Made by a program: the position numbers and the translations under genes. Below the pieces are notes generated by a model, which was not told the origin of the DNA, did not search any database, and saw only the letters and a list, made by a program, of their open reading frames with translations. From positions 310,001 to 374,000 of the forward strand of contig CDROCS010000641.1 in NCBI GenBank assembly GCA_977020255.1: DNA of 64,000 nucleotides, in the 5' to 3' direction. Within the stretch, counting starts at the first letter, position 1. The number at the start of each line of letters is the position of its first letter. This document shows positions 4,338-13,000 of the stretch, piece after piece. Origin of the DNA: Obrimoposthia wandeli (taxonomy: Eukaryota).

Positions 4338-4399
4338 CTTTTAAATTTAAGTGCTGTTTAATCAATAAAGCTTTTTAAATTCAAAATCTAATTTAACTC

Positions 4400-4570
4400 A
4401 CCAACTCCAATATCTCTATCAATGTCTCTCCAAAGTTTTATCAATTCCAATGTCTTTATCAATGTCTCTCCAAAGTTTTGTCAATTCCAATATCTTTATC
4501 AAGTCTCTACAAAGTCTTGTCAATTCCAATATCTTTATCAATGTCTCTCCGAAGTTTTATCAATTCCAAT
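4400..4570. repeat. Tandem repeat of about 36-38 bp, 4-5 copies (TCAATTCCAATATCTTTATCAATGTCTCTCCAAAGTTT)
   Basis: Directly visible repeated unit. Confidence 0.9.
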
Positions 4571-4929: not shown

Positions 4930-7900
4930 TTTCGTCCAGTTTATGATTCTTGCGTATTTATTTTCTTATTTGGCCAATCTATTTTCACCTGCTTTAAAAA
5001 TTCTGGTCCTTCCCACCACATTCTCGACTTTACCAATTCTTCTACATTTATTCCTCGGGATAGTAAATCCACTAGATTTTCTTTGGTAGGAAAATACCGC
5101 TATTGATTAAGTGTTGTTTGATATCTGAATATGTTATACTCTATTTGCTACAAATGTTTTGAACAAACGATTGTGCTGTTGTATCCAGCTCAATGTGGTC
5201 ATGCTATCACTCCAGAATGTTATTTGTTTCATTTCAATTTCTAACGCTTCCGCTACTTTTCTTCCTATGGTTAATCCTACACAATCTGCCATTAACTCTA
5301 ACCTTGGTAGACATATTGTAGATATTGGGGCTATCTTTGCTTTCGCTATTTCTAATGTACTGCTCGCTTCCTCTCCCCGTCCACAAGCATACATCACTGC
5401 TCCTTGTTCGAGTGTGGTGACTGAATCAATACTATCATCCATATAGGTAGAATATAATATTGTTTCAACAGCTCTCGGGTACTTCTATTGGTAGTTTCTA
5501 GCATTCTTTTGTGTGATCAACTGTGCCAGAAACGGATATGTATTTAAACCAAATACCAATCGGTTGAACTCTAGTTGCTGCACCTTACCATCTATCCACC
5601 ATAAAAATCTAAGATACGGTTGATCTTCTTTTGCAACCTGTATCTGTAGATACATTTCCTGAATGTCGTATATCAATGCTACTGGGTGCCGTCGAAATCT
5701 TAGTATTGTTATCAAGTCACCCTGGAGTTTTGGACCACATTCTAAAGCATCATACAAACTCATTCTGTACACTTTTGCTGTTGCATCAAATACAATTCTC
5801 ACTTTTGAGGTAATTTTATCATTACGTACTACTGGGAAGTGCGGTAACAATCACTACTATTCCACTTCCTTCTTTTCTTCTACTACTCTAATATACACTT
5901 CTGTAAGTGGTCTTTTATTACTCGGGTATATGCTTCTTCTAGCTGATTATCCCGTTTAAAACGTTGTGTCAAATTATCCAATCTTCTTTTCGCCATTTAT
6001 TGACTCTTCTGTAATTTCTCTTTTTCTATCTTTCAAGGTAACTTTACCTGATACCTCTCGCCATCGTACCTCATATTTTATTTTGTCATCTGCAATAATT
6101 TATTGTTTTCAGTCAATATATTGGTTTTCTCCAGTTCTTCCTCTACTTTCAAAAAACGTTGAAGTGCCTGATCTAGTTGCTCATTACTTGTAAAATACAT
6201 CCTTATGAAATTAACCTGTTGCCGCTGGTCTACATCGACCTTCCCTACCCATGTCTACCCGAGTGGAGTCAATCGTGCCACTGGCTCTCCCTCTCGCCCA
6301 GCAATCTCTCTCAATACTCGATGTGCCCGCATACAATCGGCTCCTATAAGTACGTCCACCTTCCGCATTCTTCTATCTCCCTGAGGAAATTTTATCTTCC
6401 TGAGATGTGTCCACGTTTGTACCACATCTCTCCACTCATAAACTTTCAAGTCGCCGGTCACGTATTTACTGTGAGTGCATCTCGTTGCATTCTCTCCCAA
6501 CTATCTACCTCTTTCACTGTTAATGTCACCGAGGTGGTGGCTATTTCGTGTACTCTACCTCCGATAACACTGCATGGTACCAACTGCCTTGTAGCTTCTG
6601 CCTTCAATACCTTCGCCACCCAACTGTTGACGTAACTGGTGGTGCTACTATCATCTAATAGCCCATTTACATGCACTGTTCTTTCTCCATTTCTGAGGAT
6701 GACTGGCACGGTTCTCAATGTAATTACTTTGTTCTTTCCACCTATCTTAATGTGGTTTGTGAATTTCATCGGTGGCATTGTGCTCCTCTTCCATTCCCAA
6801 TGCACCAAGAAGTGGTGCTTTGTTGGACATCCAGCCACATTAAAAAACTTCCTTAACTTGCATTCATTCGCCCGATGGCCTTCATTAAGTCAATTAAAAC
6901 AGAGCACATTCTTTATTACGAACTCCCACCTCTCGTCTAAATACAAGCTCTTGAACTTCTCACATTGGCTTAAATAATTATTTTCTCCGCATTTGCGCAA
7001 CTCTTCTTCCACGTTGTTCACTGATCTTGGGCTCTCCTTTCCTCGTTTCTCGGTTCTCGCCCATAATTTGGAAGTTCTTCCTTATTGCCTCCGTTATTTC
7101 GTGATATTTGAAATTAGTCCCCTCTTCTTTTTTGCATCGTCTGTGTGTGAAAATTAACTTTCTTTCGCTCCATTCCACTTGTTCACTACCCGTGATACGT
7201 CAGTAGCTTTTCGTAAATACCCTGACTCTTCCCTAGCCCAGTTCTCCAAGGTGTACATATTTTCTTGTAATCTCGTTGCGTGTAAATATCTTCCCTAACT
7301 AATAATTGCTGTCTCCGGCTATAACTTAAGAGTTCTATGGAACAGCATGCCATCTCGTAACTCCCCTTCTTTACTAATTGATGTTAATCTAACTATTACG
7401 GTTTCCAGAAAACCATTCTCTTTTCCTCCATATCTTCTTTCCTATTTTTCAATTGCCACTTCATAGGCCTTGCTTGAAAATCCCAGTCTCTCCACTAATT
7501 TCAACGATTCACCTCTCAATCAATCCCGGATATATAGGAGTTTCTCGCTTGCTTCTCCACTGGCGTTGTGTACATATACTTCAAAAACTGCTTTCCACGC
7601 TGCATATTCTCTTACATTCCCGTTGAATATTTGAACTTTTAACTTCTTCAATCTTTTAAGTCCGATATTCTTTTTTGATCCATCCTTCTATCCTCAGCCC
7701 AACCAACCTCTGAGTTCACCTCTGATTTTTTCTTGATCAGTAGTTGACTGATTTCTTCATAATTTTCTTCTATTTCGTCTATCTCCTTCTTAGTTTTCGC
7801 TGCTTTCTCATCCTGCCCGTTTTTACAACACCACTCCACCACGTCCATCATCTTTCTTACTGTTTTTTCGTATTCTTCTCCATAGCTCGACCGCTGACTC

Positions 7901-8235
7901 GCTATATTTCCCATCGCTATTCCTTCTATAACCATGTTCCTTAATCTGGTTAAATTCCACTTCATTGTTTTCTTTATCTGCATCCATTCCCTTATCTCTT
8001 CTTCCACCGTCCCACCTCTGAGTCTAAGTACTAACTGAAGGGTATTTCCTCTCTGAATCTTATAATCGGATAGGATATGGCTAGCTTCAATCTGCTTACC
8101 TGCAAATATTAATCGTTGTTGAGCTGGAGGAATGCCTCCCTTGTCCTGAATCTCTGCCTTTACCTTTTCGATAATCTAATCTTATTTTACGTCCAATGTT
8201 ATCGTCTTCCCAGTAAGAGTCTTCACAAAAACCTG
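4930..8235 (-). mobile_element. Decayed, internally deleted BEL/Pao LTR retrotransposon (Ub-gag, protease, RT, RNase H; integrase absent)
   Basis: DUF1759-type gag ([23 protein letters not shown]); protease (TLRTVPV...GLLDDSSTTSY, VDVLIGAD, PVARLTPLG); RT (LPHFPVVRNDKITSKVRIVFDA, FRRHPVALIYDIQEMYLQI, RLVFGL); Pao RNase H (AKAKIAPISTICLPRLEL, FWSDS, FKTFVANRV, DLLSRG, WWEGPEFL). Many stops and frameshifts. Confidence 0.95.
8011..8235 (-). pseudogene. Ubiquitin domain (Q2-G76) in frame with BEL Gag; two nonsense codons
   Basis: Translates [73 protein letters not shown]. My count is 54/75 identical to ubiquitin with no indels. It reads straight into TVEEEIREW (ORF 7648-8007). Confidence 0.95.
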
Positions 8236-8419
8236 TTTATTATTATGCTTACACAAACGCTGGACTGAATCCGCAAACCGACCTTCCGTCGTATTTTTCT
8301 CTAACAATAATATTCATGTATAATCTCCATTTTTGACGCCCTTTACAAACCCATCAAAACCCCTTATATTTCCCGTGTCCCGTTTCCTCTGGTTTGCATT
8401 GTAACCCTTGAACAGTCAT

Positions 8420-8568
8420 GTCCATTTTATTTTCATAATTAAATTTAGCTTAATTCCCTCAGTTATCGCTTGTCTCACCACTATTTCAGTTTGAACACAA
8501 ACTCCTGAAACGTAATCAACTACCACTAAAATACCATCTGTTAATCTTAAAACAGCAGTAACTTTACT
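8420..8568 (-). pseudogene. EEF2: Captured fragment of elongation factor 2 G-domain
   Basis: [40 protein letters not shown] matches eEF2 [40 protein letters not shown]. Confidence 0.9.
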
Positions 8569-8726
8569 GTTTAACTCTATATTATTTTTATTGTCGCTAA
8601 GGAGATTGTTTGACTTGGGGTTATTTTTGGGGTTCTCCCCATCCCCATTATGTTTTAAAAGTTTAAAAAATAATCTGTTGTTAAAATAATCCATGCAATC
8701 TACAAACTCACCAAGGTCACTCTTCT

Positions 8727-8913
8727 CCGCTTTTGGGTATCCGTTGATGGTCCCATTCGAAATCTTAAAGTCCTCCAGCTCTTTGGGATCGATACCGCCC
8801 TTGTTGTAGATTGCCCCATCAAACTCGATTACCCCGATACAGCGCGCTTCATATCGATGTAAATAGCGCATTGTATGCAACCCACATTTCCGAATCCTTG
8901 GACAATGGAGGTC
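8727..8913 (-). pseudogene. GDH: Captured fragment of glutamate dehydrogenase NAD-binding domain
   Basis: [11 protein letters not shown](fs)[39 protein letters not shown] matches animal [28 protein letters not shown]...[12 protein letters not shown]. There is a 1-nt deletion near 8881. Confidence 0.9.
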
Positions 8914-9115
8914 TTTTTTAATTCCGAATCCTCCAAAACCTTCTGAATCGGTTTCAGTGTATTCTTAAAGAGATCCATATTAAGCTCTTCAAATCGTGCT
9001 CTAGTTAACGTCTCAGAAAAATCGTCACCATCATAGAACGACTCAATCTTTATTCTGGAGCTGTGTGAACCACTCAGTACACGGTTTGCCTTCTCTACTC
9101 TCTACGCAGCTTCTG
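8914..9115 (-). pseudogene. HSPA5: Captured fragment of ER HSP70 (BiP/GRP78)
   Basis: QKLRRE(fs)[61 protein letters not shown] carries BiP-specific motifs ([24 protein letters not shown]). Confidence 0.9.
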
Positions 9116-10470
9116 TTTCAGCTCCTCGATTTGCCGCGACAACGCCTGCAGTTTCATCTTTAGCTCATTGCTTACCAGCTTCTCGCTACACTTGATGATC
9201 ACTGTTATCATGTGGTGCTTCAGCGAGTCAAACACTTATTCAGATGCAAAGTCAAGTAGTGTACACCATCTATCAAGTGACGCTGGATCTGGCGAGTCAA
9301 CTTAATGCGCTTCATGATCGAGTTAAATAGACCCAGATTCGCTATCGGTTCAGTTTGCATCAGCGTGCTTGCTAACAAGCGCTCCTAACCTTCACACTCT
9401 ATTGCAAAGACACGCAAATCCGACTCAGAGCTCTTTGCTACATTTGTAAACGATATATGCGTGTATACATTTCTTTCAACGAAATTATCATTGAAAATTT
9501 TAGAACTAAATTCTTTTGATTTCCCCAGTTCCGACTGGGTCTTAGAGTAGAGATATCGGAGACTCTTTGTTTGTTGAAAGTACTCCACACATTTGTGGTA
9601 GTCGTAATTGCAGTTTCTCAACTCAGAAACCACCTCCAAAGGATCACATAGAAACGGACATTGAGAGAGAATCTTTTCAATCTTAATCTGCATCTTTGAC
9701 AACAATAATTCCAAGGCAATGGGATTTATAATTTTACACTTTCTCTCCGGATTTTGGGGCTTGTCGAGAAAGATCTGGTGGATGAGTGTGCTTGAAATTA
9801 TTGACCTCAAACACTTCCAAGTCTTTGCTGATATTGTCAAAGTTGATCAGACTGTTGGTGTAAAACTTCGTGGACTTATGTCTTGGATCAGATTTGCAAT
9901 TGAAAGACGGTGTGAAAAAGGACTATCGACAGAGAACATATTGTAGATAGAGTCGCTGATTGGCCAGGCCTCCAATGTCTGACTGGCGCCATCTTTGCCG
10001 TCCTTGACGGAATCGGATCGGTTCTTCTCGCAATCCAAGTCGATGAGCTGCTGAAACAGATTGTCCCCCTCGTTTGCTGGAGCGCTTGGTATGCAGACAT
10101 GATCTTTTGTGCCGAATATTCGAGAATATTCCTTGTAGAGACGATGGAAGGCCAACAATAACCGACGTTTGGGGTCCTCACTAGCATCGCCTTCTACCAA
10201 GGAATAACCATTATTATCGGTTACTTACTCGCGTACTATGTCCCAGTAATAAGCTCGGTCCGCTTCGCAACGCAGAAATTGAGCTGGCGTCTTATGCTTG
10301 CAACTGTCCCCGCCCAATTGACGCCAAGCCTGGTCAGAGTCAGTCCAACTTTGAATGTCCTTCTCCAGATTACTGTTGCATGCAAATTAATTAACTTCTT
10401 TTTCGTGCCTGGAGCCCATAGCCCAACTACGCTCTGCTACCATATTTTAGCGGGCATGGTTCTGACATAG
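9116..10470 (-). other. GC-richer coding-like mosaic, probably further unidentified captured fragments
   Basis: Open frames 9385-9840 and 9847-10200, plus a coiled-coil-like stretch joined to the BiP piece. Same strand as the identified fragments; no family recognised. Confidence 0.45.
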
Positions 10471-10744
10471 AATCAAAATACATAAATCCAATATCCATCG
10501 ATTTATTTTTTAAAACATTTAAAAATTCAAATCTCTGGCAACTTTCCATTGCCAATACATCAAAAAATCCTTATTATAATAATTCACATAATTTATACAC
10601 ACGCTCACACACAACCCACACGTGGCATCATAAAAACAAATCTTTATTAATGCAAACCGCATAAATTACACCTACAACAGATTATCTTTAATTTTAATTA
10701 TTTAAATTAATACAAATTTTAAACTATTGTGTCAGAACAGTGGC

Positions 10745-11925: not shown

Positions 11926-13000
11926 TACACCTCATATTTAAGTTAAAAGGAGATTCAGATGAGGAGAGAACAGATGAGCAGATAATCTTAGGTTATCGTG
12001 AGGAAAAGTTGAGAAAAGCCTTGTACGAAAAAGATACAAAAAGGCATAATTGACAAAGACTAGGAATTTAGAAATTCAAGCCATGAGAAGCGGTAAAGAA
12101 ACCGATCGAAGGTTGGAAGACTATGAAGATAATTTCGTGGTGGCATCAGGAGAGCTAACATGTTTACAAGGGTTAGCTTTTGATTTGGGAAGTCAAGAGG
12201 GGGTAAATGAGTTAGAGAAAGAATTAGAAGAAATAAATAAATTGCACGACGAAATAGGAATACTGTCAACAGAACTGTTAAGAACAGATATGGAAAGCAA
12301 AAGAGCATTCACAACAAGCAATCAATCAAATAATAGGAATGAATTTACAGAATTAAAAAGGTTAACATTACCTATATTTAGTGGTCAAAACTCAAATTTC
12401 GAAAGTTGGAAAACAACATTTAACAAATTAATCGGAAGAAAAAGGTTAGAAAACGAGCAAATTATTGCATATGCGACAGTATTTAGGATCAGAACCATTT
12501 AGATTGGTAGAAAATTTAGGATTATCAGAAGAAGTTTATGATAAAGCATTAGAAAGATTAGAGAAAAGATATGGAGACGACGAAAGAAATTATCGAAACG
12601 TATTGAAGGACGTTGAAAAGTTAAAAATAATGAGACATGATGAAGTCTTAGAATTTGAAAAGTTGTCAGAATTATTAGAAAGGATATTAATAAAATTAAG
12701 AAGGTTGAACAAAACTGAAGATTTAGGAAACAGTTACTTGTATCAAACATTCTTAAGAAAGTTACCTCGACAAGCAATGTTAGAATGGACAAGTTGGAAG
12801 AGACGGGAAGGTAGAGAAGATTGTCTAGAAGACATGCTGATATGGGCCCAGCAAAAGACGGAAGATTTAATGGAAGCAGAAGAAGTATGTCAGGAATCTA
12901 AAATAAAACCTGAGCTAAAAGACAAGTTTGTCAAAATGGACATATATAATCAATGACAAACATATCCTAGAAGGGAAACATATTTTTAAAATAAGATAGA
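11926..13000 (+). mobile_element. BEL/Pao gag fragment inserted in the lineage A copy
   Basis: ELKRLTLPIFSGQNSNFESWKTTF and YLGSEPFRLVENLGLSEEVYDKALERLEKRYG (DUF1759-type); frameshift near 12470. Confidence 0.85.

Follow-up and report, generated by a model that had tools for sequence, protein, structure and literature searches.

BEL/Pao retrotransposons usually encode a Gag with a DUF1759 domain, a DUF1758 protease, a reverse transcriptase, a PF05380 region and an integrase, and the enzyme that processes Gag-Pol in LTR retrotransposons and retroviruses is generally taken to be the aspartic protease that they encode themselves. Host deubiquitinases cleave linear ubiquitin–X fusions after Gly76 unless X is proline; when the GG is intact and the next residue is not proline, this cleavage is normally rapid. 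The literature we searched did not describe a ubiquitin module, or a long translated leader of host fragments, ahead of a BEL/Pao Gag, and we found in it no published precedent for a ubiquitin-Gag or ubiquitin-DUF1759 retrotransposon.

The element described here shares with the cellular UBA52, RPS27A and polyubiquitin genes a 76-residue ubiquitin that ends in LRLRGG and is followed in frame by a protein beginning with a residue other than proline. Whereas the host fusions start with the Met1 of ubiquitin, the ubiquitin of the element has no Met1 and lies behind a long leader; moreover, its protein differs by 26%–29% from host ubiquitin, which is invariant, and it is joined downstream to a retrotransposon Gag. 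Host ubiquitin-fusion or polyubiquitin genes were found in the same genome (C2160, C83, C194 with a 153-residue frame, and C765 with a 128-residue frame).

Cytopathogenic pestiviruses (BVDV) carry insertions of host ubiquitin or ubiquitin-like sequences in their polyprotein (PMC13517609, PMC8310069). There, as here, ubiquitin, often together with other pieces of host RNA, lies directly upstream of a protein whose N terminus needs to be freed. The pestivirus insertions arise by RNA recombination and are cut by host ubiquitin-specific proteases, whereas cleavage in the element is predicted. They are also sporadic, recent recombinants within infected animals that place ubiquitin before the protease/helicase, whereas the element has an old, conserved module of a retrotransposon clade, placed before Gag. 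Finally, 2A "ribosome-skipping" peptides occur in the N-terminal region of the ORFs of non-LTR retrotransposons (PMC3708506). They too are short modules near the N terminus that split off an upstream peptide without the element's own protease, but they act by co-translational skipping at NPGP, whereas for the element we propose host cleavage after GG; the class of element (non-LTR) and the origin of the module also differ.

A dead BEL/Pao copy and its ubiquitin module

We analyzed a stretch of 64,000 nt from Obrimoposthia wandeli (contig CDROCS010000641.1, positions 310,001–374,000), referred to as the window. The ubiquitin-Gag feature is on its minus strand (translation of window positions 7000–8298), and the stretch holding it is the ubiquitin module of a dead, 3′-truncated copy of a BEL/Pao LTR retrotransposon. 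The features of this copy, in window coordinates and in the order in which they would be read, are the following.

10457..10739, minus strand: 5′ LTR of ~283 nt with an approximate 3′ boundary, starting TGTTCTGACA and finishing TGTCAGAACCA
10432..10442, minus strand: primer-binding-site-like TGGTAGCAGAG, overlapped by an ATG at 10441–10443
8239..10443, minus strand: decayed, putatively translated leader in the ubiquitin frame; 736 codons, counted from the ATG that overlaps the primer-binding site (PBS) to ubiquitin codon 1 inclusive
9223–10200, minus strand: unknown leader pieces
8913–9089, minus strand: BiP fragment of the leader, frame-shifted in the window copy
8725–8874, minus strand: glutamate dehydrogenase fragment of the leader
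8444–8568, minus strand: EF2 fragment of the leader
8011..8238, minus strand: ubiquitin module, codons 1–76, with the tail LRLRGG, stops at codons 19 and 21, and AAA as codon 1
7648..8010, minus strand: acidic, helical N-terminal part of Gag, 120 residues, open and in frame with ubiquitin
7157..7687 (approximate), minus strand: remnants of the DUF1759 core of Gag, outside the ubiquitin frame, with stops and a deletion inside
6258..6889, minus strand: zinc-knuckle and protease region of Pol with an LLDDSST motif, homologous to the public protein P0001
4886..5850, minus strand: remnants of the reverse transcriptase and of the "Pao retrotransposon peptidase" (PF05380), with a weak RVT_1 match

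The window copy ends at ~4886, without integrase and without a 3′ LTR; we regard it as 3′-truncated because family homology stops there. Owing to this truncation, a search for self-repeats inside the window found no LTR, and the LTRs were instead defined from other copies. In many members of the family, homology begins at the position of the window 5′ LTR, and the LTR sequence is also found after the 3′ block of pol in C1527 and flanks the unit on both sides in C75 (self-repeat of 96.5%) and C1054. The PBS motif TGGTAGCAGAG, which we take to be complementary to the 3′ end of the initiator tRNA-Met, occurs ahead of ubiquitin in 15 other distinct copies (18 rows, with three loci listed twice), as well as within the first 14 codons of the reading frame of the public protein P0002 on contig L059.

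The first-pass annotation had called the downstream partner of ubiquitin a BEL/Pao Gag, an identity borne out by DUF1759 in the copy L020 and in relatives and by PF05380 in the window. When the broken Gag, protease and reverse-transcriptase pieces of the window itself were searched against Pfam, PF05380 alone was significant (positions 5137–5442, E = 1.8e-11 / 2.4e-11), the Gag pieces being too short on their own; a weak RVT_1 match was seen in the reverse-transcriptase remnants. PF03564 (DUF1759) was matched with E = 2e-9 in L020 and with 1e-10 to 1e-15 in P0001, P0002, P0011 and P0015. The protease region of the window is 33% identical to residues 465–606 of P0001 (E = 4e-21), and P0001 has a weak match to PF05585 (0.0077). 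The element thus has in common with BEL/Pao elements as usually described LTRs (the window 5′ LTR and the LTR pairs of C75 and C1054), a PBS, a DUF1759 Gag (seen in homologous copies), a DUF1758-type protease region and the PF05380 region.

Residues Q2 (8233–8235) to G76 (8011–8013) of ubiquitin occupy positions 8235–8011 of the window. As the first-pass annotation had stated, the module is full length, without indels relative to the host's own ubiquitin and with RLRGG intact; the substitutions it had listed (I3V, E16D, L50I, K63R), the retention of L8, I44, K48 and V70, and the presence of two in-frame stops, at the codons given above, are likewise correct for the window copy. Codon 1 encodes Lys and is not ATG. 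The part after the stops matches the ubiquitin profile PF00240 partially (Pfam, E = 9e-16), and L020 matches it over profile positions 2–71 (6.6e-21); with the C-terminal LRLRGG tail, these matches place the module in the ubiquitin family. The protein is 71%–74% identical to host ubiquitin, again without indels, which suggests the same fold. At the DNA level it is only ~71% identical to the host polyubiquitin units that we read, which indicates that the element's ubiquitin is old and rules out an independent recent capture from the host. With this divergence and with its conservation across divergent families, the module differs from a pestivirus-type capture, which would be recent, sporadic and near-identical to the host gene.

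That ubiquitin reads straight into Gag holds for the conserved 120-residue N-terminal segment of Gag, which begins with TVEEE and includes a conserved K-x-NLTRxRN motif; the DUF1759 core is in another frame in this copy, owing to a single-base shift near 7690 indicated by comparison with other copies. Further decay of the window copy includes deletions of ~85 nt near 7415 and ~508 nt near 5402, as well as additional stops.

The junction among copies, sister families and public proteins

We checked whether the junction was unique to this copy and whether sister elements lacked ubiquitin. The junction proved to be family-wide and to occur in divergent families and public proteins as well. It was present in at least 43 genomic DNA matches on ~40 different contigs with 86%–92% identity (110 first-look candidates), a recurrence far beyond what chance would give, and a protein search gave 133 matches. 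One copy, L020, has an uninterrupted frame of 306 residues (L020:1249–2166), in which 22 residues come first, then ubiquitin 1–76, a linker of 128 residues and the beginning of DUF1759.

In 26 of 30 copies, the C-terminal part of ubiquitin is in frame with the linker at the junction. The tail is kept to varying degrees (L71 in 29, R72 in 28, L73 and R74 in 27 each, G75 in 21 and G76 in 25), with both glycines together in 17 of the 30, and I44 and K48 are each kept in 28. In distant relatives K48 is conserved in most, and K63 is replaced by R, M/N or Q. The GG is followed by T in 26 of the 30 copies and by S, G or M in distant relatives, and never by P, so that the module has the GG and in-frame non-proline residue of a fusion precursor. 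It does not have a Met1 of its own: codon 1 is ATA in 13 copies, ATT in nine, TTT in four, AAA in two and TAC in one, never ATG, and encodes Ile in P0001, P0002 and P0011, with in-frame sequence continuing upstream. The missing Met1 does not speak against cleavage, because internal polyubiquitin units are also cleaved.

The same ubiquitin-Gag layout was found in families of the same genome that are 57% (C332, C556, C2349 and C2209) or ~36% (C369 and C6369) identical; these are known here from protein-search matches, in which they are stop-free with open frames of 514–1108 residues, and the frame of C556 reaches 1938 residues in a further search. The colinear match starts at ubiquitin codon 1 in the 57% families and a few residues upstream of it in the ~36% families.

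Through an exhaustive HMMER search, we identified six public proteins as the nearest relatives of the linker and Gag. All six have a ubiquitin-like domain directly before the homologous linker, of which the N-terminally short proteins retain only the C-terminal part; the domain ends in GG in five and in EG in the decayed P0004. A phmmer search with host ubiquitin over 150 HMMER hits found ubiquitin only in the six that also match the linker. The two public proteins tested, P0001 and P0015, are at most 37%–38% identical to anything in the genome and are foreign to it, and the window aligns with P0001 across the GG junction without a gap (41% identity, E = 2e-28). Word-index protein searches gave no useful relatives, one returning nothing and another only the queries and one DUF1759-only clam protein, and a search of the Atlas with the L020 frame gave no usable match. 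Overall, the 76-residue ubiquitin fold is kept without indels across the clade, and ubiquitin stands at the same junction in families with only 28%–57% Gag identity. Many other BEL/Pao families of the genome match P0001 only from "RGG" onward, suggesting that ubiquitin may be dispensable or replaced in relatives.

A period of selection on ubiquitin before the stops arose, as the first-pass annotation had proposed, is supported mainly by this deep conservation. Net pN/pS between two lineages of the family (A and B) over ubiquitin codons 2–60 was 0.32, compared with 0.8–0.9 within lineages, but this value is confounded because A and B differ only in ubiquitin codons 1–60 and the leader, with zero net divergence in the linker and Gag. 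The two ubiquitin halves may thus come from separate sources, with synonymous differences that predate the element.

The leader between the primer-binding site and ubiquitin

The leader starts at the PBS, reads into ubiquitin and is 0.6–2.2 kb long (591–2205 nt among copies). In the window copy, the ATG at the PBS is in frame with Q2, which follows exactly 736 codons later. The window leader has 22 stops in the ubiquitin frame, whereas the two remaining frames contain 45 and 56 and shuffled sequence gave 49 ± 6; 15 of the 22 fall inside the shifted BiP piece, leaving seven in ~650 codons elsewhere. In four different copies, no other frame of the full leader is as open as that of ubiquitin (only two stops in 328 codons in L017), and EF2, the spacer after it and ubiquitin are in one frame in eight of 12 lineage-A copies. 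The distance from the PBS to ubiquitin is divisible by three in the window copy and in five of 15 other distinct copies. Judging from these decayed copies, the ATG at the PBS is a putative translation start. Ubiquitin is not the N terminus of the predicted product, since it sits behind the leader; its likely role is therefore that of an internal processing joint and not simply the setting of protein stability.

Copies and families vary widely in what the leader contains and in how long it is. The BiP fragment has 92% protein identity to a host frame of 633 residues, and this host BiP candidate is a single frame with no split in the matched part. In P0002 a different host fragment, HSP90, precedes ubiquitin. 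The leader piece at 9388–9840 gave CUE/UBA/HBS1_N-like leads with scores of 0.78–0.85, below the 0.9 level. Judged by sequence, the ubiquitin is old and its host passengers are young. A Helitron-like capture of the fragment chain at the DNA level is ruled out; the chain lies between the LTR/PBS and Gag and is in frame with both.

A predicted processing joint and its alternatives

The ubiquitin-Gag layout is shared by many copies, by intact sister families and by unrelated public contigs, and for this reason is probably a built-in site at which host enzymes would cut Gag free. We propose that in this family and the wider clade, one long reading frame opens at or beside the PBS and would pass through a variable leader into which parts of abundant host mRNAs (BiP, glutamate dehydrogenase and EF2) have been taken up in frame, then through a complete ubiquitin ending in LRLRGG, the acidic N terminus of Gag, the DUF1759 Gag and Pol. 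Host deubiquitinases would cut this precursor at GG|T (or S, G or M), releasing Gag(-Pol) with a defined N terminus, and the leader with ubiquitin would be discarded. Ubiquitin, borrowed from the host, would thereby act as a processing joint inside the precursor. Such a joint could explain why the sequence upstream of ubiquitin varies freely and collects host fragments, provided that the frame stays open, and why lineage-specific leaders meet shared sequence exactly at ubiquitin codon 1/2. On balance, we lean toward this account, in which cleavage after GG by host deubiquitinases separates Gag from an expendable leader.

A wider version can be put forward only tentatively, at somewhat short of even confidence: that a BEL/Pao clade uses host deubiquitinases for the first cut of its polyprotein, that the stretch from the PBS to ubiquitin is a translated "accretion zone" in which template switching deposits in-frame pieces of host mRNA, and that lineages also exchange leaders by recombination within the conserved ubiquitin sequence. 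The stretch would have become such a zone because ubiquitin insulates Gag from upstream sequence. On this version, the mobile element would be a naturally occurring cassette for expressing its proteins as ubiquitin fusions, and would steadily supply chimeric host peptides in translated form.

It is unlikely, if worth keeping in mind, that ubiquitin is instead translated with Gag and matters as a moiety, acting as a budding (ESCRT-type) or proteasome-controlled dosage signal or as an enhancer of folding or yield like that in ribosomal-protein fusions. More of the domain is kept than a cleavage tail needs, namely, I44 and K48 in 28 of 30 copies each and in most distant relatives, and the whole 76-residue fold without indels across the clade. 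Permanent attachment of ubiquitin is nonetheless unlikely with an intact GG before a non-proline residue, K63 is not conserved, and an N-terminal leader of hundreds of residues would stay attached too.

The upstream product could itself be functional, as a leader with a C-terminal ubiquitin and free GG that is conjugated or acts as an accessory or decoy, release of Gag being a by-product. The openness of the leader over 0.6–2.2 kb, the conservation of K48 and the GG tail, and the weak, sub-threshold CUE/UBA/HBS1_N-like lead would fit such a product. We nevertheless consider it improbable: a conserved function is argued against by the wide variation of leader content (BiP, glutamate dehydrogenase and EF2 here, HSP90 in P0002) and length (591–2205 nt), and the host pieces are internal fragments of enzymes and chaperones that are unlikely to fold.

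Ubiquitin might also be one more host mRNA fragment acquired by template switching, in frame only for the sake of openness, or untranslated, with Gag starting at a downstream Met. Indeed, it is the last in a series of captured host fragments on one strand, it lacks an ATG, and a Met follows six residues after GG (TVEEEM). Yet it is complete (residues 1–76), whereas the other pieces are internal fragments of 50–60 residues; it remains at the same junction in families of 28%–57% Gag identity, whereas the other fragments change; and although it is old, with ~71% DNA identity to host genes, its protein is still 71%–74% identical to ubiquitin and keeps the GG. Long stop-free frames run through ubiquitin in the sister families, and this already disfavored reading is very improbable. 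A chance local rearrangement or assembly artefact at this locus only is refuted, with next to no probability left, by the at least 43 matches with 86%–92% identity on ~40 contigs.

If host deubiquitinases do free Gag at the ubiquitin joint, a retroelement clade would be handing one processing step to these enzymes, and ubiquitin capture by pestiviruses, cellular ubiquitin-fusion genes and the 2A-like modules of LINEs would come under one principle. The long, variable, translated leader of stolen host gene pieces would be explained, and expression of the element would depend on a druggable class of host enzymes. For annotation, caution is called for, as ubiquitin matches in such genomes are often transposon-borne (5275 first-look candidates here). 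Separately, we note that a cleavage site alone would not require K48, and that its conservation in most relatives hints at some additional use of the ubiquitin moiety.

Ubiquitin module and its recurrence in the genome

The first-pass annotation had described a full-length ubiquitin reading directly into a BEL/Pao Gag. This was correct in substance, because the module has no indels relative to host ubiquitin, as read from one of this genome's polyubiquitin genes, and matches PF00240 past both of its in-frame stops, at codons 19 and 21 (Pfam, E = 9e-16). Codon 1 is AAA.

Features of the element and adjoining repeats in the window
About 10457-10739, minus strand: 5' LTR, starting TGTTCTGACA and finishing TGTCAGAACCA
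8233-8235 (Q2) to 8011-8013 (G76), minus strand: ubiquitin module (translation of window:7000-8298:-)
7648-8010, minus strand: N-terminal part of Gag, open in the ubiquitin frame for 120 residues past the GG
4384-4570: tandem repeat of ~40-nt units, just past the point where the 3' end of the element is truncated
218-879: tandem repeat adjoining the element, four copies of a 178-nt unit, up to 98% alike

The DUF1759 core of Gag lies downstream but out of the ubiquitin frame, and comparison with other copies indicates a single-base shift near 7690. Additional damage includes more stops and deletions of ~85 nt near 7415 and ~508 nt near 5402; the element stops at about 4886, and integrase and 3' LTR are absent. 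The Pol remnants, with a PF05380 match (E = 1.8e-11) and a protease region homologous to the public protein P0001, confirm that the element is BEL/Pao.

The junction is not unique to this copy. Searching the 1.35-Gb genome with the DNA of 7640-8300, and scoring 40 of 110 initial candidates, we found at least 43 matches of 86-92% identity spread over about 40 contigs, and a chance rearrangement as its origin is refuted. Each of 30 translated copies carries private damage. One of them (L020, contig C3329) retains an unbroken 306-residue frame, in which 22 residues precede ubiquitin 1-76 and a linker of 128 residues leads into the DUF1759 start (Pfam: PF00240 at 6.6e-21, PF03564 at 2e-9), and the C-terminal part of ubiquitin shares its frame with the linker across the junction in 26 of the 30 copies. 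The retrotransposon family therefore bore ubiquitin in frame with Gag.

Conservation and selection

Sister elements were found to carry ubiquitin as well, with divergent families of the same genome matching colinearly through ubiquitin into Gag. When the genome was searched at the protein level with the L020 frame, four copies of a 57%-identity family showed no stop between ubiquitin codon 1 and Gag and lay in open frames of 614, 751, 628 and 1108 residues. The match of two copies at ~36% identity began a few residues before codon 1, within frames of 554 and 514 residues that also lack stops. A search with P0001 instead gave a frame of 1938 residues on contig C556.

Linker and Gag alone served as query in an exhaustive HMMER search against 1.84 billion representative proteins, which yielded 568 matches, six of them covering the linker (P0001, P0002, P0003, P0004, P0011 and P0015). 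All six have a ubiquitin-like domain directly before the linker, reduced to its C-terminal part only where the protein is N-terminally short. The domain ends in GG in five and in EG in P0004, followed by G, S, M or N; beyond this lie an acidic stretch and the conserved motif K-x-(N)LTRxRN. The window and P0001 align without gaps across the junction (41% identity, E = 2e-28). P0001 and P0015 come from other organisms, since their closest matches in this genome reach at most 37-38% identity. Because it is present both in divergent same-genome families and in foreign relatives, the ubiquitin-linker-DUF1759 order is conserved as the architecture of a BEL/Pao subclade.

Where it aligns, the ubiquitin part shares 44-82% identity with host ubiquitin, with its tail kept, despite Gag identities down to 28-57%, a conservation that would be hard to explain without purifying selection. 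This deep conservation is the stronger argument for the selection proposed by the first-pass annotation. Within the family, we compared two lineages (A and B), whose differences are confined to the leader (the in-frame stretch between primer-binding site and ubiquitin) and ubiquitin codons 1-60.

Nei-Gojobori counts for pairwise comparisons of actual copies, no consensus (net: between minus within lineages)
A versus B, ubiquitin codons 2-60 (net): pS 0.375, pN 0.120, pN/pS 0.32
A versus B, linker and Gag (net): pS 0, pN 0, pN/pS not defined
Within lineages: pN/pS 0.8-0.9, neutral decay

The ubiquitin halves of A and B are as distant from each other (74% DNA identity) as from host units (71%), and may have separate sources; the synonymous excess may therefore partly predate the element, and the ratio of 0.32 is confounded. 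Some copies (L016, L018, L019, L022/L024 and L026) are mosaics that change from one lineage (A or B) to the other within ubiquitin (codons 1-76), which indicates recombination there between co-existing lineages. L022 (C995) and L024 (C746) have identical translations over the region read, suggesting a recent segmental duplication.

Dozens more BEL/Pao copies, several stop-free, show a match to P0001 that starts only at residue 60 ('RGG', the ubiquitin end) (in this genome, for example, C3631:15048-17201, C5780:14253-16403, C3211:316009-317778 and C430:537486-539243). These related families may be without ubiquitin, or the linker they share may be preceded by a module that has diverged much further. 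The window also holds a second BEL/Pao-like Gag on the opposite, plus strand (12050-12956; a coiled-coil part, then LKRLTLPIFSGQNSNFESWKTTF), with no ubiquitin-like frame in the 1.3 kb of AT-rich, stop-filled sequence upstream.

Leader frame and captured host fragments

Codon 1 of ubiquitin is ATG in none of the 30 copies (ATA 13, ATT 9, TTT 4, AAA 2, TAC 1). It is Ile in P0001 (from its contig), P0002 and P0011, and the upstream frame continues in all three. As read from these frames, the element's ubiquitin does not begin the protein but lies inside it, after a leader that is presumably translated. The LTR sequence recurs after the pol 3' block in C1527 and on both flanks of the unit in C75 and C1054. 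The window 5' LTR is followed by the primer-binding-site motif TGGTAGCAGAG, which fits the 3' end of initiator tRNA-Met. An ATG (10441-10443) overlaps this motif exactly 2208 nt (736 codons) upstream of Q2, in the same frame. The leader has 22 stops in the ubiquitin frame versus 45 and 56 in the other frames and 49 ± 6 in shuffles (minimum 34); 15 of the 22 fall inside one 86-codon piece that is frame-shifted in the window copy. Depending on the copy, the primer-binding site lies between 591 and 2205 nt from ubiquitin, and in four different copies the ubiquitin frame is the most open over the whole leader (L017 has two stops in 328 codons). Three different upstream sequences, each specific to its lineage, join the common sequence precisely at ubiquitin codon 1/2.

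The window leader contains in-frame host fragments of BiP, glutamate dehydrogenase (PF00208) and EF2 (PF00009), the first 92% identical to a 633-residue host frame. The likely host BiP gene (C3923:219309-219485) is a single open frame of this length, without an intron in the matched part. On an unrelated public contig (L059; ENA ERZ27314303 contig k141_4160739), the foreign element P0002 has a different host fragment, from HSP90 (PF00183 positions 283-348), followed in a single frame by ubiquitin and DUF1759 Gag, with the primer-binding-site motif within the first 14 codons. The first 279 nt of L059 are GC-rich, unlike the remainder, and could represent either an LTR or an assembly chimera. 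Within the window leader, an open stretch of 151 residues (9388-9840, minus strand; CDPLEVVSELRNCNYDYHKCVEYF) had no Pfam match and gave weak Atlas leads to CUE, UBA-like and HBS1_N clusters, scoring 0.78-0.85, under the trusted level; if real, these would place a ubiquitin-binding-type fold in the same leader as ubiquitin.

Possible role of the internal ubiquitin

Linear ubiquitin-X fusions are cut by deubiquitinases after Gly76 unless X is proline, and cells use this cleavage for polyubiquitin and ubiquitin-ribosomal protein fusions. The element's ubiquitin is likewise best read as an internal processing joint, at which a cut would release Gag(-Pol) from a disposable leader. The anatomy fits such a joint because ubiquitin is complete, its LRLRGG tail is conserved, the next residue is not proline, the acidic Gag N-terminus is conserved and the leader is variable but open; a joint would also explain the leader's gathering of arbitrary in-frame host pieces. 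We infer from these features that the protein is expressed, where it starts and that it is cleaved. Rival readings are that ubiquitin, still joined to Gag, serves as a signal or aids folding, or that leader-ubiquitin is the functional product. A passive passenger is disfavoured by the completeness, age and conserved position of ubiquitin.

Full-text searching of the literature turned up no description of ubiquitin modules in Gag proteins of BEL/Pao or other LTR retrotransposons. The nearest functional analogues of a ubiquitin joint are the insertions of cytopathogenic pestiviruses, in which captured host ubiquitin is used to free NS3 (PMC13517609, PMC8310069), and the 2A peptides of non-LTR elements (PMC3708506).

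The genome also contains arrays of tandem ubiquitin-like units (72-87 bits on PF00240) spaced about 270 nt apart. Every unit forms a separate open frame of about 82-90 residues, an arrangement that differs from the 228-nt head-to-tail repeats of normal polyubiquitin.

Ubiquitin-like arrays
C2592:108492-110327
C2050:143565-144848 and 197816-198562
C1456:374610-376436
C4682:39914-41725
Further arrays: C1351:88680-89429; C3256:57027-57509; C3909:32172-32654
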